IMG/VR virus record: IMGVR_UViG_3300024239_000013
Span: 62,001-126,000 of that record
DNA length: 64,000 nucleotides
Strand: one strand, 5' to 3'
Shown here: positions 29,677 to 58,879 of the stretch, in pieces
Numbering within the stretch: position 1 is the stretch's first letter
Layout of the letters: the number at the start of each line of letters is the position of its first letter
Position numbers and translations under genes: made by a program
Notes under the pieces: model-generated
Seen by the model: the letters and a program-made list of their open reading frames with translations, nothing else
Told to the model about the DNA's origin: nothing
Database searches by the model: none

Positions 29677-29684
29677 AATTATCA

Positions 29685-29710
29685 CCACTTACTACAAGTG
29701 GGAAGTTTTA
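29685..29710 (-). repeat. gene-junction hairpin repeat AAAACTTCCCACTTGTAGTAAGTGG (copy 1 of 11)
   Basis: Other copies: 30528-30551, 31717-31740, 32110-32134, 32457-32484, 32876-32904, 37891-37914, 38528-38552, 38708-38736, 40150-40174, 41987-42009. Confidence 0.9.
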
Positions 29711-37882: not shown

Positions 37883-38088
37883 AATTATTACCACTTACTA
37901 CAAGTGGGAAGTTTATTTTTTTGTTATATATTTCAACACTTATAATTCTTTCTGAGGTACGATTAATTTTCCAAATCGCTTGTTCTATTGCTCTTTCAAA
38001 TGATAATGCTGAAATATTTATCCTTCGTTTTTTTTTCCAGAAATATCATTTATAATGGTAATTCTATAAGTTTCCATAATTATGATTT

Positions 38089-41774: not shown

Positions 41775-43327
41775 TTAATCTTTTTCTAAGTAAATTATCC
41801 CTTCACCTTCCAATAAGATATTGTCTGCAATATCTGAAAAAATGTCTGGTGCCTCTATTAATGCATCGTCACTTTGCTGTATACATTCTCCTATTCCATG
41901 TTTTTCTAAAAACTCTGTTATTTTTTCTATTGCTAATTCTTTTTTTTCGGTTGTCCAATTTACTTGATATGCCATAATCTTTAATTCACTTAATATAAGT
42001 GAGAATTTTTTATTAAATAAGATTAAATTAAATATTATTTCTGGGATAAAGTTGTTATTTTAATGAGGTATAAAAACCTATCTGAATGTAAATATAGATG
42101 ATTAATCGTGAATCTAAAATAAAACTCCATTACCTTTCGATTTCTTTCTCCTTTACTATAACAGGGAAACATATAGTGTCACTTTCTTTAAAACTCATAT
42201 ATTCATGGAGGTTAACTTCTCTCAATTCACTATTATCGAGCAAAAAGTAATACCTTTCTACTATAATTCCTCTTCCTATAGATCCCGTTACATACTTTTT
42301 GGATTTGATTTCATAACATTGATCTTCATAAGTGTAAACATAACTTTCTTTTTCACAAGAAAAAAGAAATGATAAAATAATTAAAAAATTTACTAATCTC
42401 ATATAATTTAAAAATTTTACTATTTATTTTTAAATTCTTTTTTAATGAATCTTTCACCGTCTCTCTTAATGGAATCTAGTATGGAATCATTTGATGAATA
42501 ATAGGAATAGAAAGAATCTTTAATGTATTCGTATTTTTTATCTGGTGGAAGATTCTCAAAATAGCTGTTCATTTTACCGATAATAAATTCAACTAATCCA
42601 TCTAAAGAGCAAATGAAAGAAATAAAATTATTATTTGTCTCAATTTCTTCCTGAGTAATATTCTCCTTATTTATTCTAGATTTTAGAATTCTCATCTGAT
42701 ATTGAACATTAGTGGATAATATTGCTATTTTATAATAATCATTTTTTGTAAAATTATTATTGTTTTTTTCACAATATTCTAGGAAAAAATATTGAAATAT
42801 CGAAATCTCCCGGTCAGAATAAGGAAGCCACTTAACGATGTTTAAGTATTTATTTATTCTATCCTTTGATGAAATTTTCTCAGTAACATCTTGCTGAATA
42901 TTATCTAATCCCATTTGATCTTTTTTTTAATCCAACAAAATTAATAAACATCTACGATAAATAAAAAAAATTACGGAAATCCCATAATTTTTTTTAATAT
43001 CAGTAAATGCCTGTCAATTTAACTATCTCTTTTAAGACACAGGAGAAATAAGATGAAATTGCTTTTAATTTGGTTATATTATCTATTAAATCTTTATTTA
43101 TATAAATTAACCAAATAGTTTATGATCAAAAAAATTGAGATTGCGTGGATAAATGCTGATGTGTAAAATATAATTTTAGTGTAGTTAAATTTTTTAAAAA
43201 ATTCACCATCATCCAAAATTAAATATTTAAAAACATATAGAATTCCTATTACTGGAATATGAATGTTAAATAATTTTCTCATATTGTATAATGTTTTAAT
43301 GCTTTTAATAAACATTGTTCCAAACAC
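41775..43327 (-). other. small CDS (41775-41975; 42130-42402 lipoprotein LFSC; 42420-42914; 43094-43327 membrane)
   Basis: ORF track. Confidence 0.55.
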
Positions 43328-43644
43328 TCTTCATAGTCCGTAAAATTTGATCCTATTGATATATTTACGTCATCTCCTACGATCAAACCTTCAAAGAAAA
43401 ACCTCTTATCTTTTTTCTTAGGTATCACTGCTATGTGAATATTTTTATATTCCCTTAGCCACTTTTGGAGAAGAGATTGTGTGGGGACTTCTATCTGAAA
43501 ATATCCAATCTGGCTATTATATTGGCTCCTTGTAAGATCCCCATTCTTTTCATAATAAACATTCGAATAAGATGTAAATATAGTGCTAAATCCTATGTCT
43601 CTTGCAGCCTTAGCTGTTTTGAAAGATACTAATTTTTCTTGCAT
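43279..43644 (-). CDS. family C paralogue
   Basis: TAKAAR.IGF...PTQSLLQKWLRE...YEECLE..L.KALK. Confidence 0.75.
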   Translation of the reverse strand: MQEKLVSFKTAKAARDIGFSTIFTSYSNVYYEKNGDLTRSQYNSQIGYFQIEVPTQSLLQKWLREYKNIHIAVIPKKKDKRFFFEGLIVGDDVNISIGSNFTDYEECLEQCLLKALKHYTI

Positions 43645-43648
43645 TTTA

Positions 43649-44842
43649 TTATAGTTCTCTAATTATTTTCATTTTTTCTGCTAAAATCCATTCACCTCCT
43701 TGTGATTCTGGTCTGTTGAAAGTTTCAAAATTTTCAACCTCAACTTCAACCCAAACCCTATCTTTTTTGGATAGATGAGGAGCTTTTGGTTTCTTTAGAC
43801 AATGCCACCCCTTTCTAGATGAATATCCTTTGGTCGGATGTTCCTCTGCTACCATCCACTCGTCGATCGATAATCGCTGTTTTTTGTTTATAAAAAGAGG
43901 GGAAAGCGAACCATCTTTAAGTTTTCTAACTAATTTATAAGCCTTCATCTAATGTTGTCTTTTGTTGTTCAATGGTTTGTTGGGTTTTAGTTATCTCAGA
44001 ACCTAAAACTTCATACGAACACCCAGATCCCGAAGATTTACAGTTTATTTTTTTTAACCAGTACGTCCCATCATATTCATTAAAAGATTCCACAATGAAA
44101 CTTTCATTTGAGACATAGACCAATGATCCTTCTTTAAATTCTTTTTTAACTGTTTTATCTGGCTGATACTGTTGTAGATTTGTCCCACAATCTTTACACC
44201 CAATAGTGAATAAAACTAAAATCAATAATAATTTTTTCATACTATTTTTAAATGTGATTTATGTTCTTTCTTACGTATCAATTAGAAGTTTATAGAATCT
44301 TGTTCGTCTTGTTCTTTTTTATGAATTAAAAAGTTTAATCTATTCTCATATACCAACTCTATGCATTGTGTTTTGTGGATTTTTACTGAATATCCAGTTG
44401 TGTCGAGGATCCAAAAAGAGGTATACCTTGCTTTCTCGAATCTTACTGCCTGAAGTTCATATCCATCACCTTCATAATAAGGGGATTCAAAAGATTCGTA
44501 TCTGTCTTGTGTTATCCCATATTTTTTATTGAAAATTTCTACATATTTCCTATATTCGTCCTTTAGGCTATACCAGCTTGTTTGTTCTGGTAAATAAACT
44601 GCAAATTTCCAAACTGTATAAGATTTTGGACTGCTTACCAAAACTATATTAGCATTAGAATATTGGACCTTTCCGCTTAGAACTATGATGTTTTTATCAC
44701 TGTCAATTACTTTAAATCCCTTTGCTTTAAATTTGGCAACAACTTCATAAAGTTTACCTGAAACTTTAACTCCTAAAAATTCTTGTGAGTATCCTAAAGT
44801 TATTGTAAAAATTAACATTAGGAATGTGATGGTTTTTTTCAT
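43649..44842 (-). other. three CDS (43649-43948; 43935-44240 lipoprotein TIGC; 44282-44842 signal-peptide protein)
   Basis: ORF track, N-terminal hydrophobic signals. Confidence 0.55.
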
Positions 44843-44995
44843 TAAGATATATTTTAATAATTATTTTTTTTTATAAAATTTAATTCTGGATCATATCATT
44901 TATTCCCAGTTTGATTGATATCTACTGAACGATCTTCAGCGGATCCAATAGAATCTAAATCAATTGAAAATTCATAGAAAAACAAATATTTTATT

Positions 44996-45412
44996 CTATT
45001 GTATTAATTTTAAAGATTCCTTTAAAGCAGACTCCAATGCAGATTCATAGGTACAACCCCCTTCTTTTATGAAGAAATATAAATAGTGGTCTGAATATTC
45101 ATCAGTTTTATAGATCTCTACTTTATATTCATTATATCCAGGTTTATTTCGTAATATTTGGATATCTATTTTATGTTCTTCTCTAAGCCACTTCTGTAAA
45201 AGAGATTGTGTTGTTACGTAATACCTTTCACCTTCGTCGAATTCATTATTGCAATCATATATTACACCATCCAAATCTTCGACTATTAAAAACTCATCAT
45301 GCTCCGTGCATAATCCTTTATAGTTGTCACAATAAAAATCTGCAAATCTTAAATTGAATCCTTTTTTCTTAGCCAATTTTGCGGTTTCCTCCGATATCTT
45401 TGTTTCTAGCAT
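44996..45412 (-). CDS. family C paralogue
   Basis: ETAKLAKKKGF...TQSLLQKWLRE...TYESALE..LKESLKLI. Confidence 0.8.
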   Translation of the reverse strand: MLETKISEETAKLAKKKGFNLRFADFYCDNYKGLCTEHDEFLIVEDLDGVIYDCNNEFDEGERYYVTTQSLLQKWLREEHKIDIQILRNKPGYNEYKVEIYKTDEYSDHYLYFFIKEGGCTYESALESALKESLKLIQ

Positions 45413-45479
45413 TTTTTTGTTTTTAAAAAATATAATAATTCTAATATCTTTATAGATTCAATAAATTCCTTATGAAATA

Positions 45480-45725
45480 TTATTCATAATCTTCCGAATC
45501 CTTATTTATATCAAGACTGTCACAAACAGAAAAGATTCCTTTATACTTTTCGTCGTAATCTTCTTCCCAATTCTTCGATATTTCGTTCCAAATATATCCT
45601 TATGAACCTTTAGAGTTTTCCGAATATCTAAATTCAACAATCTCGTCATCAACATCAACCTTTCACTGGATACTTTCGACTCGCCATACAACTTGAACGT
45701 CCTCAAGTAACTTAATTTTTTCCAT
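45480..45725 (-). pseudogene. acidic 81-codon gene with two premature stops
   Basis: MEKIKLLEDVQVVWRVESIQ*KVDVDD...KGS*GYIWNE...EDYE*. Confidence 0.55.
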
Positions 45726-46572
45726 ATTTTTTATATTGTTCAAAACATTTTTTCATTCCACTATAGATTTTAGAATAGTCCTTATTATCTCTTAATTCTA
45801 CACTATGTAAAGCATTTATAATTTCCTCCTCACTATACATTCTTTCTTGTTGCCATTTAGCAATATGAATAAACATTGATTTTATCCAAGTTTTTTCATG
45901 GGGTTGAATGGTTTTTGCTTCTAATAATTCTAAACTATACTTTTCAGCAGCTTCTTCAAGGGTTTCTTGTTTTTGATTTTCTAAAAACTCTTTAACTCCT
46001 TCCTTATCTAAATGTTGAAATTCATTCCAATCTCCAAGAACTTTTTCTTTCGGGTTATTTTTTAGATATTCTTGTAAATTTTCAACAATTGTTTTAGGTT
46101 TGTGTTTTTCTTTTGAAATGATTATTTTGTAAAAAATTTGTGGGTTACATTTATAAGTATAATCACAAGATGATTTAACAGAACTATCACAAGATGTGCA
46201 TTTACAAATAGAATCAAATTTAACCTCCTCACAATTAGGATTTTTAACAAACCATTCTAAAAACTCATCATCAATAGCTTGTACACCATCTTTGATTAAG
46301 TCTTGGTCTGTTGTCATTATGACTAATTTACATTCGGATAAATCAGTTAGATAATTAGGAAACTTATTTAAAATATTTCCTTTTTCTAAATGCCATTTCC
46401 CTTTATGTAGTCTTACATCTTTAATTTCTTCATCATAAGTGATGTAAATGTGTTGGTTATTCAATCTTCCTCCTCTAATAATACAATTCTTATCAAGTCC
46501 TAAATTATTTGTCAATTCAGATCTAAATAATCTACTTGGTTTATCTGTTGGCACTAAATGTATGTTTTTCAT
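45712..46572 (-). CDS. family B paralogue
   Basis: MKNIH..PTDKPSRL / IYIT..EEIK / TTDQDLIKDGVQ.IDDEFLEWFVKNP.CE / KQETLEEAAE / AKWQQE..YSEEE. Confidence 0.85.
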   Translation of the reverse strand: MKNIHLVPTDKPSRLFRSELTNNLGLDKNCIIRGGRLNNQHIYITYDEEIKDVRLHKGKWHLEKGNILNKFPNYLTDLSECKLVIMTTDQDLIKDGVQAIDDEFLEWFVKNPNCEEVKFDSICKCTSCDSSVKSSCDYTYKCNPQIFYKIIISKEKHKPKTIVENLQEYLKNNPKEKVLGDWNEFQHLDKEGVKEFLENQKQETLEEAAEKYSLELLEAKTIQPHEKTWIKSMFIHIAKWQQERMYSEEEIINALHSVELRDNKDYSKIYSGMKKCFEQYKKYGKN

Positions 46573-46577
46573 GACCT

Positions 46578-46970
46578 TTATTTTTCTTTAACAATTTCAA
46601 TTAATTTCTTTAAACATTCAAGTTCTGCTTCTTCTTGTGTTCTACACAAGTACCATTCTCCTATTCCGATTTCCTTATAATTTCCAAAATGTTCATATTG
46701 GAATATGTCAAAACAGAATTTGGGATCTGTTGTTCTGTCTATTTGAATTTCACAAAATAGGTTATATTTCTCTCTAAACCATCTAAATGCTTGTGAGAAT
46801 GTCGGGGCATATATATTTTGAATTGCTTCTTCTAAATAATTGTAATCATTAGGAGAATCCTGATAGTAGATTAAACTATTATTTTGACTATAAAATCCAA
46901 AACAAGATTCATCAAATCCTAATTCTTTTAAAGCTAATGCAATTTTATAAGGTACGAATTCCCTTTCCAT
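46578..46970 (-). CDS. family A paralogue
   Basis: ME.EF.PY..AL.LKELGFDE.C / APTFSQAFRWFREKY / EEAELECLKKLIEIVK. Confidence 0.85.
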   Translation of the reverse strand: MEREFVPYKIALALKELGFDESCFGFYSQNNSLIYYQDSPNDYNYLEEAIQNIYAPTFSQAFRWFREKYNLFCEIQIDRTTDPKFCFDIFQYEHFGNYKEIGIGEWYLCRTQEEAELECLKKLIEIVKEK

Positions 46971-46971
46971 T

Positions 46972-47382
46972 TTAAATTAATTTTAATGCTTCTTGTAACC
47001 CAACCTCGTAGGCTTCTTCATAAGTATCGTAAGTAATATCACCTCTTTTCCACATTTGGATAATACCAACTGGTAATCTATGTAAATCAAATGACCAATT
47101 TAATAATTTATTGTAATTATTATTACTTATTTCAATATGGATATTATGTTGTTCTCTCAACCATTTAGCAAGTAGTGATTGTGTTGGTGCATAAGCAACT
47201 ATTGTTAATATATTACCAAAACTATCTACACTTCCTACAGAATGACTATGATGTAGCTTTATTTTCTTATACTGCTTATTATCACTATTAGGAGTGTTAG
47301 CAAAACAAACATCTGTAAAAATGTTAAATCCTTTTTCTTTTGCAAGTTTTGCTGTTTTAAATGTTATAAGTGTATCTTCCAT
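46972..47382 (-). CDS. family C paralogue
   Basis: TAKLAKEKGF / APTQSLLAKWLRE / TYEEAYEVGLQEALKLI. Confidence 0.85.
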   Translation of the reverse strand: MEDTLITFKTAKLAKEKGFNIFTDVCFANTPNSDNKQYKKIKLHHSHSVGSVDSFGNILTIVAYAPTQSLLAKWLREQHNIHIEISNNNYNKLLNWSFDLHRLPVGIIQMWKRGDITYDTYEEAYEVGLQEALKLI

Positions 47383-47400
47383 AGTTTTTTGTTTGGTAAG

Positions 47401-47886
47401 TTAAAGTTGTTTTTCATTTTGCCCTTTAACAATTTCAAATAATTTCTTTAAACATTCAAGTTCTGCTTCTTCATACGTAAGTGGATGAATGTTTAAATCT
47501 TCTAAAGTTTCACCTTCATCAAACATATCTAATGTTGCGGTAAACCATTCACCTACAGGATATCCCATATAATAAGAATTTTGAGTCCCCTTATTAGTTA
47601 TAAAAATATCGTAATCCCCCCCTAATATAGGGAAAGAATCGTACCCATTTTTTGAACCTAATATGGGTTTCATTGCGTAATGAATATTATATTTCTCTCT
47701 AAACCATCTAAAGATTTGTGAGAACGTTGGAGAAAGACATCCATTATTTCTCTTGAATATATTTCCATTTCTAGCATACTGAATATACAAATAACCATCA
47801 GTACCATAGAAACCAAAGCAAGGTTCATCAAAACCTAAGTCTTTAAGTTCTAATGCTTGTTCATAAGGTATAAATTCTTTTTCCAT
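47401..47886 (-). CDS. family A paralogue
   Basis: Same three constant blocks. Confidence 0.85.
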   Translation of the reverse strand: MEKEFIPYEQALELKDLGFDEPCFGFYGTDGYLYIQYARNGNIFKRNNGCLSPTFSQIFRWFREKYNIHYAMKPILGSKNGYDSFPILGGDYDIFITNKGTQNSYYMGYPVGEWFTATLDMFDEGETLEDLNIHPLTYEEAELECLKKLFEIVKGQNEKQL

Positions 47887-47923
47887 TTATTACTTTTTAA
47901 TTATATAAACACCATGAATTTCT

Positions 47924-48145
47924 TCATATTGAGGTAATCCATTTTTTAAGTTCTTTTATTTCCTTTTTGTAATCATCTTGTTGTACTATTAAACTAAAGT
48001 TTAAAGCGATCGAAAATCCAAATAAAACCACCATTAAAAATACATAATATATTCTTGAATATTTTTTATCATCAATGGCATAGCATACTTTAAAATATCC
48101 TATTATAAATAGAATAATCATTATTACAAGCACTGTTTCTCTCAT
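47924..48145 (-). CDS. small two-TM membrane protein
   Basis: Two hydrophobic segments. Confidence 0.55.
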   Translation of the reverse strand: MRETVLVIMIILFIIGYFKVCYAIDDKKYSRIYYVFLMVVLFGFSIALNFSLIVQQDDYKKEIKELKKWITSI

Positions 48146-48495
48146 AATTTATTTCTTTTATATTGTTCAAACCATTTTTTAAAAACATCTTTCTTAGATA
48201 TTTCAATAATTTCCCATTTTTCTAATTTTATTAACTCTTTATATTGATAATAAAAATCAGCAAATTCAATCATATCTTCCTCTGTATACAAGTTTTTATT
48301 TTGTTCTTGTTGCCATTTAGCACCTTCGATCCATTCGTCCCTATATTGTTTATTTTTATCCCATTCATCATCTTCTAAAACAATTGGGTATAACATATAA
48401 GCAATCTCTTCAAGTGTTTCTTGTTTAGGTTCTTCTAATGGAGTACAATCACAATAAATTGTATGACCACAATAACATTTTGTTTTATTTTCCAT
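48142..48495 (-). CDS. family B C-terminal module with short Cys-rich N-terminus
   Basis: CYCGH..CDC then PKQETLEE...GAKWQQEQNKNLY...WFEQYK. Confidence 0.8.
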   Translation of the reverse strand: MENKTKCYCGHTIYCDCTPLEEPKQETLEEIAYMLYPIVLEDDEWDKNKQYRDEWIEGAKWQQEQNKNLYTEEDMIEFADFYYQYKELIKLEKWEIIEISKKDVFKKWFEQYKRNKL

Positions 48496-48499
48496 TATT

Positions 48500-49285
48500 T
48501 TACTTTTTAAATTGTTTTAAAATTAATTTATTAAACCAATCGCCAAACTGTATTTTTGAAAAACCTACAGATGATAATGCTTCATTATAAGAGTGTTTAG
48601 CAATTTTTTCAACCTCTTCCTCATTATACAAGTTTTTGTTTTGCTCTTGTTGCCATTCTGAACCTAGTCTAAAAAATAATATAAGACTATCAATTAGTGT
48701 TTCGTTTGATATTTTTCCACCTTTAGGATAATCTGAAAAAGTCTTATTAAAAGTTTCTAAAGCAATTCTTTTTGCTATTTGTTCAAGTGTTTCTTGTTTA
48801 GGTTCTTTTTTTGGAATGATTATTTTATATAATTGACCACCGTTATTTAACCACTCATCAAATTCCCTGTCAGTTAACCCTATATCATGTCCGTGAATAT
48901 TTAATTCAACTTCTATCTCATCAGGAGTTTTTTCATCAACATTAATAAACTCACAACTAGGATTTTTAACAAACCATTCTAAAAACTCATCATCAATAGC
49001 TTGTACCCCATCATTTATTAAGTCTTGGTCTGTTGTTAAGATGATTTTAGAAGCATTATCTAATTCTTTAGAAAGTAAATATGATACTTGAACCAATCTA
49101 CCATCTTTAGTGATTATCCAATCATTATCTTTAATGTCTTTTTCAGAAGTAATGTAGATATTTTTAGGTTCAACATATTCAACACCTCCTCTAGGAAATT
49201 TATCAAATATCAAATAGTTTTCCTTTCTAGTTGATAACCATAACCTACTTGGTTTATCTGTTGTTAATAAATGTATGTTTTTCAT
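48500..49285 (-). CDS. family B paralogue
   Basis: All constant blocks. Confidence 0.85.
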   Translation of the reverse strand: MKNIHLLTTDKPSRLWLSTRKENYLIFDKFPRGGVEYVEPKNIYITSEKDIKDNDWIITKDGRLVQVSYLLSKELDNASKIILTTDQDLINDGVQAIDDEFLEWFVKNPSCEFINVDEKTPDEIEVELNIHGHDIGLTDREFDEWLNNGGQLYKIIIPKKEPKQETLEQIAKRIALETFNKTFSDYPKGGKISNETLIDSLILFFRLGSEWQQEQNKNLYNEEEVEKIAKHSYNEALSSVGFSKIQFGDWFNKLILKQFKK

Positions 49286-49290
49286 AATAA

Positions 49291-49680
49291 TTAAATTTTA
49301 AAATCAATATTTTCAGGTTTTAGAATATTTTCATATGCTTCTTTATAAGCTTTTTTTATATAATATGACCCAATTCCTGCATAATAAAAAATATCTGCAA
49401 GTGTTTTGTCTTCTGATTTATTAAATTCATTAGTTGCTAATATTTTTATAAGTCTATCTACTTCATTCTTTAAAGAAGTAAAATAATTATATTCTTCACT
49501 ACCAATTTCGAATTTTTTTACTATTCTATCTTTACCATTATTAATCCAAGTGAAATTATATCTATCAGGTTTATAATCAATATGTTCTATTCTTAAATTT
49601 TTTCCTTCTTCTGCCGATACGTAATAGTATTTAATACGACCTCTAAAATTTATAAGAGCGTAATAATCTTTATTTTCCAT
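49291..49680 (-). CDS. hypothetical protein (MENK start)
   Basis: ORF track, start adjusted. Confidence 0.55.
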   Translation of the reverse strand: MENKDYYALINFRGRIKYYYVSAEEGKNLRIEHIDYKPDRYNFTWINNGKDRIVKKFEIGSEEYNYFTSLKNEVDRLIKILATNEFNKSEDKTLADIFYYAGIGSYYIKKAYKEAYENILKPENIDFKI

Positions 49681-50065
49681 AATTTTGTTCTTTAGCAATT
49701 TCAATTAATTTCTTTAAACATTCAAGTTCTGCTTCTTCGTAAGAATTAAATGATATTCCTTCATGTAAAGTCCAATACATTTCAATATCGCAAAAAACAG
49801 CAAATGTATATGAAGGTTTTGTATGATAATGCACAAATTTATGTAAATTGTGGGTTTTTCTAAACCATCTAAATGCTTGTGAAAATGTTGGTGCAGCAAT
49901 CATTAGTTTATCTCTATTTGAATGAAATGAACATATTTCATCTTTCATAGGAATAGGTTTTAATTTGTTATTTTCTTCTATATCAAAATAAAAACTCAAT
50001 GCTTCATCAAATCCTAATTCTTTTAAAATTAATGCTAAATTATAAGGGATAAATTCTTTTTCCAT
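49670..50065 (-). CDS. family A paralogue
   Basis: Constant blocks. Confidence 0.85.
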   Translation of the reverse strand: MEKEFIPYNLALILKELGFDEALSFYFDIEENNKLKPIPMKDEICSFHSNRDKLMIAAPTFSQAFRWFRKTHNLHKFVHYHTKPSYTFAVFCDIEMYWTLHEGISFNSYEEAELECLKKLIEIAKEQNYGK

Positions 50066-50069
50066 TATT

Positions 50070-50984
50070 TTACTTTTTAAATTGTTGAATCAAGTAAGTT
50101 ATAAACCAATTTCTTTTTCTAACCCACTCATCAAAATTTGTGTTGGAGTTATCTTTTAATTCTTTAGTGTTAATATAATTACTTATATTTATAAGCATGT
50201 CTTTAACTTCTTCCTCTGTATACAAATTTTTATTTTGTTCTTGTTGCCATTTAGCACCATTTATGAAGATTAATCTTTCTGTTTCACTCATATCAAAACC
50301 TGAATCAGTAAAACTATTTATTGTTGTAGGATATAATCTTTCGGCAGCTTCTTCAATTGTTTCTTGTTTTATTTCTTCTTTATCTTGCATCATTGGAATA
50401 GCTAATTTGATTGTCTCTTCACCTATACTTACTAATTCAAACTCTTCTTCTTTTGGTGAATATCCACAATAACATTGTGTTTTAGGTGTTAATGTCATTC
50501 CTTTTGAACCACATTCAGGACAAATATCTTCTTCTTTTGTAATAATTAACACATAAGAATGACTACTTTCATCAAAATAAGGAACTTTGAGAGTTCTAAC
50601 AAAATCACAATTAGGATTTTTTACAAACCATTCTAAGAACTCATCATCAATTTCTTGTACACCATCATTAATTAAGTCTTGGTCTGTTGTTAGGATAATT
50701 TTTTTACAATCACAAATTAAAACTTCAATACCATTAATATGATAGTTTTTTTCTCTAAAAGATTTATTACCGTTCGATTCAGTAATTACTCCAACTTCTA
50801 ATATTCGATTTGTATATAAATGTAAAACAAAACCTTCTTTAATTTCTTCATCAGAAGTGATGTAGATATGTTGATTTAATATAGTATCAGTGCCATATTG
50901 AAATCCTTTAGCAAATCCTAACTTTCCATTATAAATATATAATCTACTTCGTTTTTCTGTTGGTAATAAATGTATGTTTTTCAT
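50070..50984 (-). CDS. family B paralogue
   Basis: Constant blocks; CPECG..CYCG insert. Confidence 0.85.
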   Translation of the reverse strand: MKNIHLLPTEKRSRLYIYNGKLGFAKGFQYGTDTILNQHIYITSDEEIKEGFVLHLYTNRILEVGVITESNGNKSFREKNYHINGIEVLICDCKKIILTTDQDLINDGVQEIDDEFLEWFVKNPNCDFVRTLKVPYFDESSHSYVLIITKEEDICPECGSKGMTLTPKTQCYCGYSPKEEEFELVSIGEETIKLAIPMMQDKEEIKQETIEEAAERLYPTTINSFTDSGFDMSETERLIFINGAKWQQEQNKNLYTEEEVKDMLINISNYINTKELKDNSNTNFDEWVRKRNWFITYLIQQFKK

Positions 50985-50986
50985 AA

Positions 50987-51409
50987 TTATTCTTTAATGT
51001 ATGTGTATTTTGTTAGAATCATAGTTTTAAGTCTCCTTACTTCTCCTATTTGAGCACCTCCTTGACATTTATTAACAAGTTCATTATACTCATTGTACCA
51101 GATTTTTTCTAAATCTTCTTTAGTACCTGTTTTATTTACTAATTCTTCAAAATACTCAGCATAATTCCAGAATATAATAGATTTTCTATTTATAGATATC
51201 GCAAGAATAACCAACCAAGAAAATATCATTCCCATTAAAACACCATATTTTAAATAATTAAGATTATCAGTAAATGTTCTTTCTCCAGAAATGTAGTCTA
51301 ATCCATAGAACAAAGTTGATATAAAAAATATTAAAATTGGATATATTACTATCCACACCTTAAATAAATGTGTCTTTTCGAAAAATCTGTTAAATGTTTT
51401 CATAGACAT
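50987..51409 (-). CDS. two-TM membrane protein, paralogue of 13135-13533
   Basis: Sequence comparison. Confidence 0.6.
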   Translation of the reverse strand: MSMKTFNRFFEKTHLFKVWIVIYPILIFFISTLFYGLDYISGERTFTDNLNYLKYGVLMGMIFSWLVILAISINRKSIIFWNYAEYFEELVNKTGTKEDLEKIWYNEYNELVNKCQGGAQIGEVRRLKTMILTKYTYIKE

Positions 51410-51831: not shown

Positions 51832-51832
51832 A

Positions 51833-52630: not shown

Positions 52631-52652
52631 GCCCTTATTTTTTTAGTGATTA

Positions 52653-53126
52653 TTACATAATATCAGTAGAATGATCAATAAGTTTAAGAGATTCATACAA
52701 ACCCTCCTCTAGTGCATTCTCGTAGGTTTTATGGTGAATAGTAAAGAAAGATAATCTTTTCCAAGGTTTACCCGACGGATTTTCCTTATTTGGAACATAG
52801 ATTTCGAATCCAAAATCTCCAGCGATTTTTTGGACTATTAGGACCCTTATTTTATGGGTCTCTCTTAACCAGCATTGAAGATGTGATTGAGTAGGAGCAG
52901 AATATACCTCATAAGAATTATTCGACATATCAAAACCATCGACACCATTCTTATGATAAAAATTTGACATTTCGACCTGATCTTTTTTATAAGATTCTGG
53001 GTGATCTGGATCATCGTCATAAACGTAATCTTTCTTATAAATCACATATGAATTATAAACTCCTAAATCAAAATTCTTATTCTTAGCTAATTTTGCGGTC
53101 TTCTTTGATATCAATCTATCTACCAT
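52653..53126 (-). CDS. family C paralogue
   Basis: TAKLAK.K.F / APTQS.LQ.WLRE / TYENALEEGL.ESLKLI. Confidence 0.8.
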   Translation of the reverse strand: MVDRLISKKTAKLAKNKNFDLGVYNSYVIYKKDYVYDDDPDHPESYKKDQVEMSNFYHKNGVDGFDMSNNSYEVYSAPTQSHLQCWLRETHKIRVLIVQKIAGDFGFEIYVPNKENPSGKPWKRLSFFTIHHKTYENALEEGLYESLKLIDHSTDIM

Positions 53127-53229
53127 ATCGTTTTATATTATGAAGCAAATCTATAAAATTATTACGGAGATAAAAAATAACAACAAAAAATGCACGCTCT
53201 TTATGTGTGATAATTTTTTGGATTCATAT

Positions 53230-53601
53230 TTAGTCACATTGATCCTTGCATAATCTAATTAATGTGTTAAGGCACTCTAGTCTGGCTTCATCGTAGATAC
53301 TAAATTCTTTAGATTTAATAAAAGTAAAACCGGGTTTCGTTACTACAGAGTAGTATAGTGGTAATTTAGGATTTTCGAAAGCATAGGAAACACTACTCTC
53401 CATTTTATAGTTATATCTAAAAAAATCAAAAGCTTGCTGCCAAAGGGGAGCTGATGCAACTTGACCATGGAAACTGAATTGTTTTTTACAATACTCCATA
53501 TTAAGGTACTTATCATCAAGATAACAAGCATAGCATGGTTCATCAAATCCAAGTTTTTCAAGTTCTAATGCTTGTTCATACGGGATAAATTGTTCTTCCA
53601 T
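53230..53601 (-). CDS. family A paralogue (divergent)
   Basis: FIPYEQALELEKLGFDEPC / APLWQQAFDFFR / YDEARLECL. Confidence 0.8.
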   Translation of the reverse strand: MEEQFIPYEQALELEKLGFDEPCYACYLDDKYLNMEYCKKQFSFHGQVASAPLWQQAFDFFRYNYKMESSVSYAFENPKLPLYYSVVTKPGFTFIKSKEFSIYDEARLECLNTLIRLCKDQCD

Positions 53602-53607
53602 AATCTT

Positions 53608-53922
53608 CTATTTTCGTTTGACAATTTCAATTAATTTCTTTAAACATTCAAGTTCTGCTTCTTCGTATGTTTTAAAAACGCTCAGGTTCCACTTTTCAAA
53701 AAACCACATTCCGTATTTTATTTGTATTGAGTAGTACAGTCCATACTTTTCCCTAAACCATCTAAATGTTTGTGAAAATGTTGGTGCTTTATTGATACCA
53801 TCGGAATATCCATAACAAACTTTATTGTTACTAAACTCGTCATAAAATCCCAAACAAGATTCATTAAAACCTAATTCTTTTAAAGATAATGCAACTTCAT
53901 AAGGTAAAAACTCTTTTTCCAT
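53608..53922 (-). CDS. family A paralogue (shortest)
   Basis: Constant blocks. Confidence 0.85.
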   Translation of the reverse strand: MEKEFLPYEVALSLKELGFNESCLGFYDEFSNNKVCYGYSDGINKAPTFSQTFRWFREKYGLYYSIQIKYGMWFFEKWNLSVFKTYEEAELECLKKLIEIVKRK

Positions 53923-53923
53923 T

Positions 53924-54291
53924 TTAAATTAATTTTAATGCTTCTTGTAAACCAATCTCGTAGGATTCTTCATAATTATTTTTTTCTACACTTTGATACC
54001 CTTTTACAATTGGTTTGTCAAAACAAGGTGTTAATATATATTTTTTAATTCCATTGGAAAAAGCTCTCTGAACTAAATATCAATTTCATGTTCTTCTCTC
54101 AGCCATTTAGCAAGTAGTGATTGAGTTGCCCTTTCGTACCATTCTTTACAAGTATCAACCATAGCACCACCTATCCCTAAATTTTCTATACTACCATCAT
54201 CTCTAAACTTTCCTTTTGTTTTTCTTGATTGTGGAAATCCTTTTTCTTTAGCAAGTTTTGCTGTTTCAGATGTTATTCTTGTATCTACCAT
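53924..54291 (-). pseudogene. family C paralogue with 1-nt frameshift near 54075
   Basis: After EEHEIDI the alternative frame reads LVQRAF...YEESYEIGLQEALKLI*. Confidence 0.8.
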
Positions 54292-54423
54292 ATCGTTTTT
54301 ATTATGAAGCAAATCTATAAAATTATTACGAGGATAAAAAATAACAATAAAAAAAATAGATGTTCTTTATGTGTGATAATTTTTTGGATTCATATTTAGT
54401 CACATTGATCCTTGCATAACCTT

Positions 54424-54792
54424 CTATTTTCGTTTGACAATTTCAATTAATTTCTTTAAACATTCAAGTTCTGCTTCTTCGTATGTACCATTATAGTTCA
54501 TAGGTTCAGTTCCAAGTTGTCTATTTCCTTTATTATCAAAAACTTGATAAGAAAACTCTTGTGTTCCAATCTCAATTAAACCACATAATTTATACTTTTC
54601 TCTAAAGAATCTAAATGCTTGTGAGAATGTTGGGCAGTTAATTGTATTATACAACATTGAACCTCTTGGTGAAGATTTACTTCCTTTAACGTGAATGTAA
54701 CCTATTTGGTCTATACTACCAAAACAAGTCTCATCAAATCCTAATTCTTTAAGTTCTAATGCCAAATTATAAGGTACAAATTCTTTTTCCAT
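54424..54792 (-). CDS. family A paralogue
   Basis: Constant blocks; last about 60 nt identical to 53608-53922. Confidence 0.85.
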   Translation of the reverse strand: MEKEFVPYNLALELKELGFDETCFGSIDQIGYIHVKGSKSSPRGSMLYNTINCPTFSQAFRFFREKYKLCGLIEIGTQEFSYQVFDNKGNRQLGTEPMNYNGTYEEAELECLKKLIEIVKRK

Positions 54793-54990
54793 TTATTTCT
54801 TTTTAAATTTATCACATCTTTTAATCCAGTGTGGGTCATAATTACTAGGAAAAAAGAAAGACCATTGATTCCATGTAGCATCTAATTTTTTATTTCTTCC
54901 TTTAAAATCTTCTTTTTGCCATTCAGCATTACATTTTGAATGAGCGTCTCCTATAATTTTTTCTCTAAATTTACAATTTATACAATTCAT
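54793..54990 (-). CDS. small Cys-rich protein
   Basis: CINC..GDAHSKC..FP.NYDP.W..C. Confidence 0.55.
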   Translation of the reverse strand: MNCINCKFREKIIGDAHSKCNAEWQKEDFKGRNKKLDATWNQWSFFFPSNYDPHWIKRCDKFKKK

Positions 54991-54993
54991 GAT

Positions 54994-55857: not shown

Positions 55858-55994
55858 TGTTGTTTTAATTTTCTATAACAAATATATAACAATTATTTTT
55901 TATTCAACGGGATATTTTATAAAAATTTAATACTACTACAAAATCATCATTTACTTTTAATCTTTTGAAATTGTTCAATCATTTTAATATGTTT

Positions 55995-56654
55995 TTATAG
56001 GTTTTTTTCAACCCATTTATCCCATTCAAAAAAGACACTATGCAAAGAATCCGATTTCCAGCCATTTTCACAATATTCCTTTACTTTATTAGCAAATTCA
56101 ATAACCTCTTCCCTACTCCAGCTATCTTTTGCTATCTTAATTGTAATAGTATTGTCTTGTGGATTTATTTTTAATATAGATTTAACCTTATCATAACCAT
56201 ATGCATCTAGTTCATCCACATATTCTTTACCCTCAAATTTATTTTCACATTCAACTAATACATCGGTAATAATGTTCCCACGATTATATTCTTCAATATA
56301 TTTTTGAATAAATTGTTGTGATGGTTGAGGTAATTCTAAAGAAGAGTCAGTCGAAGCAATTACTTTTTTAGCTACATTTTTAAATTCCTTAGTAATAGCC
56401 TCTAATCTTTTTGAATCACATTTATGTAATCCATAATAAGAAGATTTCATAGATGTACCTAAATACCAGTCATTTTCTTTAATTTCATCATCTGAAATAA
56501 TATAAAGATGATGCCCAATATAATCTTCATGTTCCATTAAATATTTAGTTTTAATAGCAATTATTTTATCTTGTCCTGTTATATCTTTACAAATCATTCC
56601 ATCTGTTTTTTGATTAGTTGGTAGCATTACCACATTCGCATTAATAAAGCTCAT
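55995..56654 (-). CDS. distant family B relative
   Basis: MLPT / HLYIISDDEIKENDW / KVIASTD / WSREEV. Confidence 0.65.
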   Translation of the reverse strand: MSFINANVVMLPTNQKTDGMICKDITGQDKIIAIKTKYLMEHEDYIGHHLYIISDDEIKENDWYLGTSMKSSYYGLHKCDSKRLEAITKEFKNVAKKVIASTDSSLELPQPSQQFIQKYIEEYNRGNIITDVLVECENKFEGKEYVDELDAYGYDKVKSILKINPQDNTITIKIAKDSWSREEVIEFANKVKEYCENGWKSDSLHSVFFEWDKWVEKNL

Positions 56655-56693
56655 TTTTTTTATTTTTTTTAAGTTCTGTAAAATTATTATTTT

Positions 56694-57104
56694 TTAAATT
56701 AATTTTAATGCTTCTTGTAATCCAATCTCATAGGCTTCTTCATAAGTTTTAAAATGCAGTGTGAAGTATGCTAATCTTTCAAAAGGTTTTCCGACAGGAT
56801 TGTCTTTATTTGGAATATAAATTTCGAATCCAAAATCTCCTGCAATTTTTTGTATTGGGTATACTCTTATACTATATTCTTCTCTCAACCATTTAGCAAG
56901 TAGTGATTGTGTTGGGGCAGAAACAAATTCTATATCAGATGTATTTTCTCCTCTTATATACTTTCTTATCCTCCAATCTGATACATCTCCTTTAAATTCT
57001 CCCTTGTAATTATAATAAGGAATTTCAAGTCTGTTAGTTTCTTGGAAAAATCCTTTTTCTTTAGCAAGTTTTGCGGTTTCAAATGTTACTCTTGTATCTT
57101 CCAT
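56694..57104 (-). CDS. family C paralogue
   Basis: MEDTRVTFETAKLAKEKGF / APTQSLLAKWLRE / TYEEAYEIGLQEALKLI. Confidence 0.85.
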   Translation of the reverse strand: MEDTRVTFETAKLAKEKGFFQETNRLEIPYYNYKGEFKGDVSDWRIRKYIRGENTSDIEFVSAPTQSLLAKWLREEYSIRVYPIQKIAGDFGFEIYIPNKDNPVGKPFERLAYFTLHFKTYEEAYEIGLQEALKLI

Positions 57105-57128
57105 ATTTTTTTGTTTAGTAAGCAAAAG

Positions 57129-57563
57129 TTATTTTATATTTTGTTTTTTAACAATTTCTATTAATTTTCTGATACAAGCAAGTTCTGCCTCCTCGTAAGA
57201 GTTATAAATTATTCCACTTTGCATTTCAGATAAAAAGTCTTGCCTTATGTTTTCAGAAATATTTTTAATCTCATAAGCATAATCTATTTTATTAATTGGT
57301 AAAACTATACAAGAGTGTAATTTATACTTCTCTCTAAACCATCTAAATGCTTGCTGATATAGTGGTGCGGATATAGGTTCATTTTCAAATCCTTCTAATT
57401 GACTATTTAGAAGTAAATGAGGACAATGTGATAGAGGATTACCTTCATTTACAGTATCATAACAAAATAAACTTATTTCATCAAAGCCTAATTCTTTGAG
57501 TTCTAATGCTAATTCGTAAGGACAGAAAAGACTTTCCATTCCTTGTTTTTTTACTTCTTCCAT
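57129..57563 (-). CDS. family A paralogue
   Basis: Constant blocks. Confidence 0.85.
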   Translation of the reverse strand: MEEVKKQGMESLFCPYELALELKELGFDEISLFCYDTVNEGNPLSHCPHLLLNSQLEGFENEPISAPLYQQAFRWFREKYKLHSCIVLPINKIDYAYEIKNISENIRQDFLSEMQSGIIYNSYEEAELACIRKLIEIVKKQNIK

Positions 57564-58424
57564 TTATTTCTTTTTAGATAATAAAAAATCTTCTTTTGCA
57601 TCTACTCTAAATGAACTAGCATATTTATGAAATAATAAATCAATAATTTTTAAAACCTCTTCTTCACTATACATTCTTTCTTGTTGACATTTGACTAATT
57701 CTATTGCTCGTTTGATGACTATAGGTTTTGTTATATCTCCAAAACCGTCAAATATTCTTTCAGCAGCTTCTTCAAGTGTTTCTTGTTTGGGTTTTAAATT
57801 TTGTAACTCAATAATACTTCTAGTACCAAAGCCTATTTGTTTTAGTTTACTTTGTTCTATATTAAGTGCTTCTTCTAAAGTTAGATTAAATTGTTTTAAA
57901 GAGTTCTCTAATCTTACTGATATTACTTGTTTCTTTTCTTCTTTTGGAATGATTATTTTAAATAGTATGTGAGTTCTATAATTACCATGACAGGTTTTAT
58001 ATTTAGGATTGTTTTTGTCTTCATTACAATTACTACATACGTAATTATATTTAACATCAACCTTTTCACAACTTGGATTCTTAACAAACCATTCTAAGAA
58101 CTCATCATCAATTTCTTGAACACCATCTTTGATTAAGTCTGGGTGTGTTGTTAGGATTACTTTTTTATACTTATAATCAGTACCTGTTGATATATTCAAG
58201 ACTTGTTCCTCATTACATTTAAATAATTCAGTAATTTTTTCATTATTAGGTGTAAATTCGATACACCAATCTCCCTTTTTAATTATTTCATCAGAAGTAA
58301 TGTAGATGTGTTGAGATGTATTGAATGGTAATACATTTTTTGATAATTCTAACTTACCTTGAAGTAAATTATTTTTCCATAATCTACTTGGTTTATCTGT
58401 TGGTAATATATGTATATTTTTCAT
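57564..58424 (-). CDS. family B paralogue
   Basis: Constant blocks. Confidence 0.85.
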   Translation of the reverse strand: MKNIHILPTDKPSRLWKNNLLQGKLELSKNVLPFNTSQHIYITSDEIIKKGDWCIEFTPNNEKITELFKCNEEQVLNISTGTDYKYKKVILTTHPDLIKDGVQEIDDEFLEWFVKNPSCEKVDVKYNYVCSNCNEDKNNPKYKTCHGNYRTHILFKIIIPKEEKKQVISVRLENSLKQFNLTLEEALNIEQSKLKQIGFGTRSIIELQNLKPKQETLEEAAERIFDGFGDITKPIVIKRAIELVKCQQERMYSEEEVLKIIDLLFHKYASSFRVDAKEDFLLSKKK

Positions 58425-58816
58425 AGTTTTTCTTCTTTAACAATTTCTATTAATTTTTTTAAACACTCATGTTCTGCTTCTTCGTAAGAATAGTAAGGAC
58501 TTGAATAAAAATCTTTTTTAATGTAATCATCTATTCCAAAATAGAACCCTTTATTTTCTCTTTGTTGATACAATGACTTAATATGAGACTCTATATTATA
58601 TTTCTCTCTAAAAAATCTAAATGCTTGAGAAAATGTTGGTGCTCCACATAAATCTTCCCATTCACTATTTTTTGCTAAATAAGGAAAATCTTTTAATATG
58701 TGCCTTTCAATATAATCTAAATCTCCATTTGGTTCATAATAACCAAAACAAGGTTCATCAAAACCTAAGTCTTTAAGTTCTAATGCCAAATTATAAGGTA
58801 TAAATTCTTTTTCCAT
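58421..58816 (-). CDS. family A paralogue, first gene after promoter 58838
   Basis: MEKEFIPYNLALELKDLGFDEPCFG... Confidence 0.85.
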   Translation of the reverse strand: MEKEFIPYNLALELKDLGFDEPCFGYYEPNGDLDYIERHILKDFPYLAKNSEWEDLCGAPTFSQAFRFFREKYNIESHIKSLYQQRENKGFYFGIDDYIKKDFYSSPYYSYEEAEHECLKKLIEIVKEEKL

Positions 58817-58879
58817 AATGTCCATCTTATTAAAGGACAAATTTATAAAAATGTTACGAATAAAAAAAATATCAGAAAT

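Follow-up and report, generated by a model that had tools for sequence, protein, structure and literature searches.

A tandem array of 23 mosaic paralogues with conserved framework blocks and variable inserts in a 319-kb jumbo phage

The gene array and its components

We analysed a window of 64,000 nucleotides (positions 62,001 to 126,000 of IMG/VR record IMGVR_UViG_3300024239_000013) from a 319-kb phage, probably of a Flavobacterium or other Bacteroidota host. Clustering of all open reading frames of the window by blastp yielded exactly two groups of paralogues, a 14-member A/C superfamily and a 9-member B family. All are encoded on the minus strand between positions 43279 and 58840 (Table 1). 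There are eight A genes, five intact C genes and one C pseudogene, six full-length B genes, two genes with only the C-terminal B module, and one distant B member. A and C share one layout, and both match phrog_12005. The A/C proteins have 104-161 amino acids. The B proteins have about 260-300 amino acids and consist of an N-terminal module (BN) and a C-terminal module (BC). Below, genes are named by family and first coordinate.

Table 1. Features of the array (window coordinates)
Coordinates	Strand	Feature	Remarks
58838..58858	-	CG-N11-TAnnTTTG promoter-like site	upstream of A58421
58421..58816	-	A-family gene A58421	first gene of the array; ATG start fixed by comparison with relative L084
57564..58424	-	B-family gene B57564	full length (BN + BC)
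57129..57563	-	A-family gene A57129
56694..57104	-	C-family gene C56694
55995..56654	-	distant B-family member (Bdist)	phrog_15656, E 2e-13
55879..55886	-	TAnnTTTG-only site	upstream of B54994
54994..55857	-	B-family gene B54994	full length
54793..54990		interleaved ORF	Cys-rich
54424..54792	-	A-family gene A54424	AlphaFold model
54332..54422		partner of the 91-nt direct repeat	86%
54310..54330	-	CG-N11-TAnnTTTG promoter-like site	upstream of the C pseudogene
53922..54312	-	C-family pseudogene	79-aa N-terminal ORF (54073-54312) plus out-of-frame C-terminal remnant (53922-53980)
53608..53922	-	A-family gene A53608
53230..53601	-	A-family gene	most divergent A copy
53166..53256	.	91-nt intergenic direct repeat	junction of a deletion in L084
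53146..53166	-	CG-N11-TAnnTTTG promoter-like site	upstream of C52653; no further intergenic TAnnTTTG match from here to the low-coordinate end of the array
52653..53126	-	C-family gene C52653
51833..52630	-	B-family gene B51833
51400..51831	-	gene with the BC module only
50987..51409		interleaved ORF	membrane protein
50070..50984	-	B-family gene B50070	phrog_15656, E 2e-9
49670..50065	-	A-family gene
49291..49683	-	interleaved non-family gene
48500..49285	-	B-family gene
48142..48495	-	gene with the BC module only (Bc48142)
47924..48145		interleaved ORF
47401..47886	-	A-family gene
46972..47382	-	C-family gene C46972	phrog_12005, E 9e-31
46578..46970	-	A-family gene
45712..46572	-	B-family gene B45712	no PHROG hit
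45506..45706		interleaved ORF
44996..45412	-	C-family gene
43649..44842	-	three interleaved non-family genes	a phrog_12224 protein and two predicted lipoproteins
43279..43644	-	C-family gene	last and most divergent copy
59474..60268	-	GIY-YIG homing-endonuclease-like gene	immediately upstream of the array

The first-pass annotation had described three interleaved families in which short constant blocks, conserved also as DNA, alternate with unrelated segments, and this observation is confirmed. Pairwise nucleotide identity is 0.75-1.00 in the constant blocks, whereas in the variable segments it is 0.29-0.67 in family A and 0.45-0.67 in family C, compared with a mean of 0.54 and a maximum of 0.63 in shuffled controls. 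The only exception is one cassette shared by C52653 and C56694 (var2, 0.77). A 66-bp block occurs at the six reported positions, 46249, 48971, 50625, 52307, 55528 and 58086, with 52 of 66 columns invariant and mean column identity of 95%.

Two corrections are needed. Firstly, the array had been described as driven by CG-N11-TAnnTTTG promoters. However, only three such sites and one TAnnTTTG-only site lie within it, and the array is therefore a few tightly packed operons rather than a series of genes with individual promoters. The motif is nonetheless enriched in the window, with 13 matches against 1.6 expected, 12 of them on the gene strand. Secondly, variable segments v2 and v3 of family B are not fully unrelated, as their mean identity is 0.29 against 0.16-0.18 in shuffled sequences, and AlphaFold confidently models them as beta strands.

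In the predicted structure of an A protein (pLDDT 84) the three constant blocks are the three helices and the variable parts are the beta strands. The only fold lead for A, T7 Gp1.2, is weak (E 0.17). The model of B (pLDDT 83) has no fold match in PDB.

Distribution, reassortment and silent-site conservation

The families are not restricted to this genome. Family B has at least 8,000 homologues and, in metagenomes, 11,939 cluster representatives at 50% identity (E<=1e-3), and family A has at least 7,960 homologues. Neither has a Pfam or NCBIfam model, and a tblastn search with B51833 returned no hit in 50,697 GenBank phage records. Most of 80 IMG/VR loci hold one B copy. The A/C and B genes lie on the same strand within 10 kb in 30 loci and are often adjacent. 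In other phages B lies among replication genes. Genes for Gad2 and GmrSD_N, and a weak Acb1 hit, were observed near family members in relatives.

Variable segments reassort between genes. In a 293-kb relative (L086), gene 9650-9997 is identical at the DNA level to A53608 by 98.7% in var1 and 97.6% in the middle constant block, and then switches, inside the middle constant block, to 94.4% identity with A54424 in var2. The var1 type of A54424 is found with at least nine var2 types, including that of A57129, and its var2 type with at least seven var1 types. In family B, 245 of 6,105 pairs are mosaic, that is, one segment is >=70% identical and another <=25%. B51833 shares v1, v2, v3 and v5 each with a different set of metagenomic proteins, and the chimeric protein P0003 of another relative (L095) combines v1 of B51833 with v3-5 of B50070 (94-100%). 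Pairwise identities of variable segments are bimodal, with a large near-random mode, few values between 0.4 and 0.7, and a small mode above 0.7. Mosaics are also seen within the window itself. The constant blocks of C46972 and C56694 are 0.93/1.00/0.94 identical in DNA, but their variable segments only 0.60/0.61, and 167 nt of Bc48142 are 98.2% identical to codons 186-242 of B51833, including a variable segment. On the other hand, the PHI test gave no signal, with 45-56% of site pairs incompatible at all distances, and among 46 unbiased B genes almost every cassette is unique (41-42 types per segment). Recombination reassorts diversity but does not explain its origin.

The arrays differ between close relatives. 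L084 and L085, two independent assemblies 97.5% identical to the window in the flank, lack A58421 together with two thirds of B57564, lack exactly A57129, have Bdist and B54994 collapsed into a chimeric remnant, and lack 54235-53256, with the junction inside the 91-nt repeat. L095, a contig recovered in two samples, has a permuted gene order and two chimeric B genes. Four of six mapped junctions lie in constant blocks or a repeated spacer. However, some junctions in L084 are at microhomologies or start codons.

The constant blocks retain position-specific, even rare, codons across about 80 phages (same-codon fraction 0.79 against 0.52-0.59 expected). Within the window this fraction is 0.76-0.79 in the A and B blocks, against 0.50 expected, although family C is close to saturation (0.53 against 0.46). 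It is 0.78-0.79 for window-window, window-other and other-other pairs alike, against 0.585 expected. It is 0.90 against 0.57 for the BC module and 0.70 against 0.52 for A. Specific codons are fixed at specific columns: CTA at 73% (12% globally), GAC at about 90% at two Asp columns but GAT at 96-99% at three others, GAG at 90%, and AAG at 83%. In contrast, control genes of the same loci (ResIII/DEAD helicase, UDG, DnaB-like, ThyA), at 35-50% amino acid identity, give 0.45-0.54, about as expected, and are saturated. The silent-site conservation is a property of the whole family, not of this array.

Interpretation and alternatives

The most likely explanation, in which we have moderately good confidence, is that the region is an exceptional lineage-specific expansion of three co-occurring, very widespread and uncharacterised phage gene families. 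Each protein would be a fixed framework, three helices in A/C and seven short blocks in B, interrupted by hypervariable cassettes in the form of beta hairpins, loops and small zinc-ribbon-like inserts. The data, all of which come from short-read metagenome assemblies, demonstrate that cassettes reassort across the constant blocks both between paralogues of one array and between different phages, that recombination between constant blocks and repeated spacers expands, contracts, permutes and chimerises the array, and that the blocks are conserved at silent positions family-wide. The remainder is inference. The diversifying mechanism is likely general homologous recombination during replication or co-infection, with the constant blocks as homology arms. 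The silent-site conservation may reflect a shared, continually exchanged pool of block DNA, selection to keep the blocks recombinable, or both. From sequence and context alone, the products may be cytoplasmic binding proteins expressed early or in the middle of infection, whose framework would engage something constant and the cassettes something variable, host-takeover or counter-defence targets being the best guess.

The interpretation given in the first-pass annotation is supported in part. Its core, the swapping of variable segments across constant blocks acting as homology arms, passes the tests proposed with it: reshuffled alleles exist in related genomes, arrays differ between near-identical relatives, and synonymous sites of the constant blocks are far from saturated. 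However, nothing shows a dedicated system. No reverse transcriptase or site-specific recombinase was found among the window proteins scanned, all repeats are direct, and ordinary homologous recombination is sufficient. The suggested antibody-like repertoire against host defence proteins is conjecture; the only context is the early/replication gene neighbourhood and a few known counter-defence genes nearby in relatives.

One possibility, unlikely but the least unlikely of the alternatives, is that the silent sites preserve a functional nucleic acid element, such as an RNA or ssDNA structure, a translational pause or a binding site, with recombination as a by-product. Indeed, the 81-nt consensus of B block b3 folds to -22 kcal/mol (z = -3.07 against synonymous recodings, only 0.6% of which are as stable). 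Moreover, the plateau of silent-site identity, equal for all pairs, with identity to the consensus codons independent of locus GC (r=0.09), as expected for direct constraint, could also come from direct nucleotide-level selection unrelated to recombination. However, there is no covariation, and third-position variants mostly break the predicted pairs. Across the eleven blocks the mean z runs from +0.63 to -1.72, with most values near zero; b3 in the six window copies averages -0.8 and only the short b2 block reaches -1.72. No antisense or alternative-frame ORF is shared by the blocks, and a single element cannot explain eleven or so unrelated blocks in three families.

It is improbable that these are ordinary old tandem duplications, with the constant blocks as a protein core under purifying selection, the variable segments as fast-evolving loops and no special role for recombination. 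In favour of this reading, the blocks are the family-wide conserved motifs and form the predicted core secondary structure, B segments v2 and v3 keep weak residual similarity, and family C is near silent-site saturation. However, amino acid selection cannot fix rare synonymous codons column by column, nor hold same-codon identity at 0.79 while helicase and ThyA genes of the same phages are saturated. It also does not explain 99%-identical cassettes next to 78%-identical flanks, the many combinations of var1 and var2, or a 100%-identical constant block between segments at random-level identity. This reading is largely refuted.

Assembly artefacts are about equally improbable. Assemblers could switch between paralogues or strains at exactly the constant blocks, possibly in the window contig as well; most breakpoints lie where this would happen, and exact matches between paralogues reach 46-50 nt. 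However, the same variant array was assembled independently from two runs (L084 and L085), L095 was recovered in two samples, one combination (var1 type 0 with var2 type 1) occurs in 20 protein clusters and others recur too, and contigs of 270-319 kb run through the arrays. Several L084 junctions are not at repeats, and the codon conservation does not depend on linkage.

A programmed device (a diversity-generating retroelement, a shufflon/invertase, or silent-cassette gene conversion) is very unlikely: although the constant-variable architecture resembles the targets of such systems and a GIY-YIG endonuclease-like gene abuts the array, no reverse transcriptase or site-specific recombinase was found among about 50 proteins scanned in the 64 kb of the 319-kb genome, the variable segments differ in length and cannot be aligned, so they are not template/variable repeat pairs, all repeats are direct and on one strand, and all but one copy are intact ORFs in operons, not silent cassettes.

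Comparison with known systems

The families, the scale and the silent-site conservation appear to be undescribed, whereas the principle of shuffling has been proposed before. The corresponding PHROG entries, phrog_12005 and phrog_15656, carry neither a function nor a description of the mosaic architecture.

Large phages are known to expand single small-protein families, for example about 35 zinc-ribbon copies in Bacillus phage G (PMC7824862), and a homing endonuclease can drive amplification of anti-defence loci in T6 (PMC13096335). By analogy, the adjacent GIY-YIG endonuclease-like gene may stimulate recombination here, but this is only a lead. The copies in our array are old and diverged (<=58% amino acid identity) rather than fresh amplicons, and the distinguishing feature is the cassette architecture with its family-wide silent-site conservation, not copy number alone.

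In polymorphic toxin and Rhs C-terminal displacement systems (PMC3482391, PMC2935791), a conserved part provides homology for recombination that brings in alternative variable modules from nearby cassettes. Those have one constant N-terminal region and one variable toxin tip with a cognate immunity gene, whereas here there are several internal cassettes per protein of 100-300 amino acids, and no toxin or immunity domains were found.

In mosaic multigene families of antigenic variation, such as the Plasmodium var genes with their homology blocks (PMC3680017), conserved blocks interleave with hypervariable segments, ectopic recombination between paralogues creates new mosaics, and copy number varies. 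Bacterial pilS/vls cassettes are of a similar kind. These systems serve immune evasion by surface proteins, and many have one expression site plus silent cassettes. Here almost all copies are complete ORFs of a virus in predicted operons, and the exchange also runs between different phage genomes.

The closest analogy is the Gp38 tail-fibre adhesins of T-even phages (Straboviridae), in which short conserved glycine-rich motifs alternate with hypervariable segments and are proposed to be recombination hotspots for modular shuffling between phages (PMC12032242, citing Tetart, Desplats and Krisch 1998 and Trojet et al. 2011). The logic is the same, but the proteins are unrelated, with no Pfam or PHROG link and no glycine-rich motifs. 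Gp38 is a single-copy virion adhesin encoded in the tail-fibre locus, whereas the genes described here lie in the replication/early region, belong to three families, reach 23 copies in one array, and are conserved at silent sites across about 80 phages.

The array and the distribution of its families

The window belongs to IMG/VR contig UViG_3300024239_000013 (319,334 bp). It is about 28-30% G+C, and nearly all its genes lie on the minus strand. The gene content is typical of a large lytic phage: RNA ligases, a Thg1-like enzyme, ClpP, an SLT transglycosylase and homing endonucleases. All-against-all blastp of the window's ORFs yields two large clusters, both confined to the array, a 14-member A/C superfamily and a 9-member B family. 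Family A has eight copies, and family C has five intact copies and one pseudogene. Family B has six full-length copies, two genes with only the C-terminal module (BC) and one distant member (Bdist). Below, individual genes are named by family and window coordinate.

The total agrees with the 23 paralogues counted in the first-pass annotation. The 66-bp block named there has 52 of 66 columns invariant. Constant blocks are 75-100% identical in DNA, whereas variable segments score 0.29-0.67 (0.77 for the one shared cassette, var2 of C52653 and C56694), the same as shuffled sequence at mean 0.54. Thus the observation of constant scaffolds alternating with variable segments is confirmed. The genes are packed 0-40 nt apart in a few operons. 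The array had been described as driven by CG-N11-TAnnTTTG promoters; only three such sites and one TAnnTTTG-only site lie inside it. However, the motif is strongly enriched in the window, with 13 matches, 12 of them on the gene strand, against 1.6 expected on both strands. It probably marks one class of phage promoters recognised by a Bacteroidota-type sigma factor.

The families are very large. In metagenomes, B has at least 8,000 homologues in the 90%-identity collection and 11,939 50%-identity cluster representatives at E<=1e-3, of which 4,332 are at <=1e-30. A has at least 7,960 homologues in the 90%-identity collection. Pfam, NCBIfam and PDB sequence searches gave no meaningful hit, and PHROGs lists the families only as being of unknown function. 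C46972 (E 8.7e-31, residues 3-136), C52653 (E 1.5e-21) and A46578 (E 9.5e-8, N-terminal two thirds) match phrog_12005. In B, where phrog_15656 corresponds to the N module, Bdist matches it with E 2.1e-13 (residues 4-194), B50070 matches it with E 2.1e-9 but only over residues 34-106, and B45712 gave no hit.

Both families are almost absent from cultured phages. Megablast of the array and of 20 kb of flank against 50,697 GenBank phage records found nothing. In the same records tblastn found nothing with B, and with A only three megaphages and a Leptolyngbya phage. A scan of 185,579 species genomes gave eight hits, all on MAG contigs and four of them in Flavobacterium bins; the families are therefore not resident bacterial genes. 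A search of BFVD returned only uncharacterised phage proteins, including one from Tenacibaculum phage PTm1. Together with the TAnnTTTG motif, the Bacteroidota -7 promoter element, this points to Bacteroidota hosts.

Related loci were collected with the six full-length B genes. In 80 IMG/VR loci most phages have one B gene within 10 kb either side. A/C lies nearby on the same strand in 30 loci and is often adjacent, and extra BC-only genes are common. Where the neighbours can be named, they are replication and nucleotide-metabolism genes: a ResIII/DEAD helicase, UDG, a DnaB-like helicase and ThyA. The array is therefore an exceptional expansion of a common early-region module.

AlphaFold models A54424 at pLDDT 84. 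In the model, the three constant blocks are the three helices and the two variable segments are the beta strands. The best PDB match found by Foldseek is weak, T7 Gp1.2 with E 0.17, followed by dsRBD-like folds. B51833 is modelled at pLDDT 83 as a beta-rich N module and a helical C module joined by a low-confidence linker, and Foldseek found no PDB match for it. Many B cassettes carry CxxC...CxxC motifs. The constant blocks are the same motifs that are conserved across the whole family.

A set of RNA-repair genes in the window suggests countermeasures against tRNA-cleaving host defences. One of these, an RNA ligase gene, appears split, and could represent an intein with a frameshifted or free-standing endonuclease.

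Positions of features in the window and in related large phages (L001, L086 and L096)
Sequence	Position	Strand	Feature
Window	2169-4064		631-aa protein with an SPFH/Band 7 domain (Pfam E 1.3e-25)
Window	5945-6688, 9756-10598, 16858-19441, 26883-27527, 27534-28631		RNA-repair genes: polyA/CCA-polymerase head domain, Thg1-like tRNA-His guanylyltransferase, RNA ligase, metallophosphoesterase, T4 Rnl1-like ligase
Window	18632-19441		Apparently split RNA ligase gene: OB-fold plus intein N-part
Window	17589-18557		Apparently split RNA ligase gene: homing-endonuclease ORF
Window	16858-17595		Apparently split RNA ligase gene: intein C-part plus ligase domain
Window	23795-24544		ClpP protease (Pfam E 5.5e-55)
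Window	29239-29688 / 30828-31208 / 37442-37894; 40816-41304 / 41308-41769; 13135-13533 / 50987-51409		Three further small paralogue sets, including a membrane-protein pair with one member inside the array
Window	4108, 8840, 14326, 20045, 28650, 42936, 59147 (examples)		CG-N11-TAnnTTTG motif
Window	43279-58840		Array of A/C and B genes
Window	43649-43948		phrog_12224 protein, embedded near the low-coordinate end of the array
Window	43935-44240, 44282-44842		Two predicted lipoproteins (signal peptide plus Cys), embedded near the low-coordinate end of the array
Window	52290-52372	-	Example of B-family block b3
Window	53922-54312		C-family pseudogene: N-terminal 79-aa ORF, frame break, C-terminal remnant in another frame; lies within the stretch (54235-53256) that relative L084 lacks
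Window	59474-60268		GIY-YIG homing-endonuclease-like gene directly upstream of the array; also present in relative L084
L086	9650-9997		A-type gene combining window cassettes
L096; L086; L001	14139-14750; 11696-12241; 11246-11812		Genes with Pfam hits to Gad2 (anti-Gabija), GmrSD_N and, weakly, Acb1, 0.3-4 kb from A or B genes

Reassortment of variable segments and rearrangement of the array

The first-pass annotation had proposed looking for reshuffled alleles in related genomes, and such alleles were found. In L086, a relative of 293 kb, one gene is 98.7% identical to A53608 in var1 and 97.6% in the middle constant block, and then switches to 94.4% identity with A54424 in var2. Its first 63 nt match neither gene well (78-79%). 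The neighbouring L086 gene carries the A54424 var1 (95.8%) with an unrelated var2. Among 111 parsed homologues, the var1 type of A54424 is joined to at least nine var2 types, one of which is that of A57129, and its var2 type is joined to at least seven var1 types. The sample is biased towards A54424-like proteins, which shapes the table of combinations but not the conclusion.

In family B, 245 of 6,105 pairs have one segment at >=70% identity and another at <=25%. B51833 shares its variable segments v1, v2, v3 and v5 each with a different set of metagenomic proteins. P0003, a protein of the relative L095, combines v1 of B51833 with v3-5 of B50070. Identities of variable segments are bimodal, with a near-random bulk, few values between 0.4 and 0.7, and a small mode above 0.7. 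In an unbiased set of 46 B genes almost every cassette is unique, and sharing at one segment predicts sharing at another only 0-33% of the time. Mosaics also occur inside the window contig itself. C46972 and C56694 have a 100%-identical middle block flanked by segments at random-level identity, and the BC-only gene Bc48142 and B51833 are 98.2% identical over 167 nt. On the other hand, a PHI recombination test on the constant blocks was uninformative, as incompatibility is about 50% at all distances.

The relatives L084 and L085 were assembled independently from two runs. They are 97.5% identical to the window over 4.8 kb of flank, yet their array differs in four ways. Firstly, they lack A58421 and two thirds of B57564, and the A start codons are fused to the BC module at a microhomology. 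Secondly, they lack A57129 exactly, with the junction at the ATGGAAGA start. Thirdly, Bdist and B54994 are collapsed into a frameshifted chimera, joined in the IYI(T/I)SD(E/D)EI block. Finally, they lack 54235-53256, with the junction inside a 91-nt spacer repeat. L095, recovered in two samples, shows a permuted gene order and two chimeric B genes whose switches lie in constant blocks. Thus the array is highly dynamic, and four of the six mapped junctions lie in constant blocks or a repeated spacer. However, these observations rest on short-read metagenome assemblies, as does the rest of the analysis; independent recovery of the same variants argues against assembly chimeras but does not exclude them.

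Conservation of silent sites in the constant blocks

In the constant blocks of the window, identical residues use the same codon 76% of the time in A and 79% in B, against 50% expected from codon usage. Family C is near saturation, at 53% against 46%. Unexpectedly, the same value holds between phages. For the 27-codon block b3 of family B it is 0.78-0.79 for window-window, window-other and other-other pairs, against 0.585 expected. Particular rare codons are fixed at particular columns, while other columns of the same residue use the common codon. Examples are CTA at 73% against 12% globally, GAC at about 90% at two Asp columns but GAT at 96-99% at three others, GAG at 90% and AAG at 83%. The BC module gives 0.90 against 0.57, and A gives 0.70 against 0.52. 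Control families from the same loci, at 35-50% amino-acid identity, give 0.45-0.54, about the expected value; essential replication genes of the same phages are saturated. The effect does not depend on locus G+C (r=0.09). The whole B gene keeps a low GC3 whatever the locus composition, although only three loci are G+C-rich.

Amino-acid selection cannot produce this pattern. Either the block DNA belongs to a shared and continually exchanged pool, or it is selected as DNA or RNA. An RNA structure explains at most one block. The 81-nt b3 consensus folds into a long hairpin of -22 kcal/mol (z = -3.07 against synonymous recodings, only 0.6% of which are as stable). However, there is no covariation, and most other blocks are at z near 0, with the short b2 block lowest at -1.72; the result is suggestive for the b3 consensus only and does not generalise. 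An overlapping antisense ORF was rejected, as plus-strand ORFs overlap only two of the six b3 copies.

Interpretation and comparison with known systems

We consider it demonstrated that cassettes are exchanged across constant blocks within and between genomes, that unequal recombination remodels the array, and that the blocks are conserved at silent sites family-wide. What follows is inference. The agent is likely to be general homologous recombination: no reverse transcriptase or site-specific recombinase was found among the scanned proteins of the window, which covers 64 kb of the 319-kb genome, and all repeats are direct. The adjacent GIY-YIG endonuclease-like gene may stimulate recombination, by analogy with SegB-driven amplification in T6 (PMC13096335). 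A GIY-YIG gene family also recurs within 10 kb of B genes in nine other phage loci. The proteins are inferred, from sequence and predicted structure alone, to be intracellular binders with a constant and a variable face. The enormous diversity of the cassettes themselves is not accounted for by this mechanism.

Thus the earlier interpretation, in which constant blocks act as homology arms and give an antibody-like repertoire, possibly against host defence proteins, is supported only in part. The anti-defence idea rests only on context, namely the Gad2, GmrSD_N and weak Acb1 hits near family members in relatives, which are consistent with an accessory or counter-defence neighbourhood. The fold similarity of A to T7 Gp1.2 is likewise only a weak lead. 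A bolder possibility, which we regard as unlikely, is that the constant blocks are maintained at the DNA level because they are recombination arms. In this view selection would act on evolvability, and the three families would form a phage-borne combinatorial library of small binding proteins, with a fixed framework and exchangeable cassettes. The library would be shared across a large community of Bacteroidota phages and used to keep pace with diversifying host targets such as defence proteins. It would be a germline-only, population-level counterpart of an antibody repertoire.

If the shuffling is confirmed, it extends the principle of recombination between conserved motifs from tail-fibre tips to intracellular early proteins. 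It also offers a natural scaffold-plus-cassette binder design, and a tractable case for asking whether homology for recombination can itself be selected. The 23-gene array, together with relatives that differ in its make-up, is a ready-made system for such questions.

On what was scanned in this 64 kb of the 319-kb genome, enzyme-driven and cassette-switching systems do not fit the array. A diversity-generating retroelement has a reverse transcriptase and a template/variable repeat pair of equal length differing mainly at adenines, whereas here no reverse transcriptase was found among the scanned window proteins, and the variable segments differ in length and are at random-level identity. Shufflons have inverted repeats in conserved regions and a site-specific recombinase. 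Here all family genes and repeats are direct and on one strand, and no recombinase domain was found among the scanned window proteins. Silent-cassette antigenic variation of the pilE/pilS or vlsE type has one expressed locus and promoterless partial cassettes, but 22 of the 23 copies are complete ORFs with start codons. A recent gene accordion would consist of near-identical tandem copies of one segment. The paralogues are 20-58% identical in protein and only short tracts exceed 95%, although copy number does differ between relatives. Polymorphic toxins and Rhs proteins have a large conserved N-terminal region, a variable C-terminal toxin domain and an adjacent immunity gene, whereas these proteins are 104-304 aa long, with several internal cassettes and no toxin or immunity domains.

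Literature searches found analogues but no paper describing these families. The closest known case is gp38 of T-even phages, in which conserved glycine-rich motifs between hypervariable segments are proposed to be recombination hotspots for modular shuffling (PMC12032242, citing Tetart et al. 1998). The similarity is one of architecture only. There is no Pfam, PHROG or NCBIfam link, the blocks are not glycine-rich, and the neighbours are replication and RNA-repair genes rather than a tail-fibre locus. Plasmodium var homology blocks, Rhs and polymorphic toxins, and lineage-specific expansions in jumbo phages (PMC7824862) are further analogues. The families are unrelated to gp38 and to each of these analogues. 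Recombination between conserved motifs is thus an already proposed principle; what differs here is that the families sit in the early/replication region, form a 23-gene array, and show family-wide conservation at silent sites.
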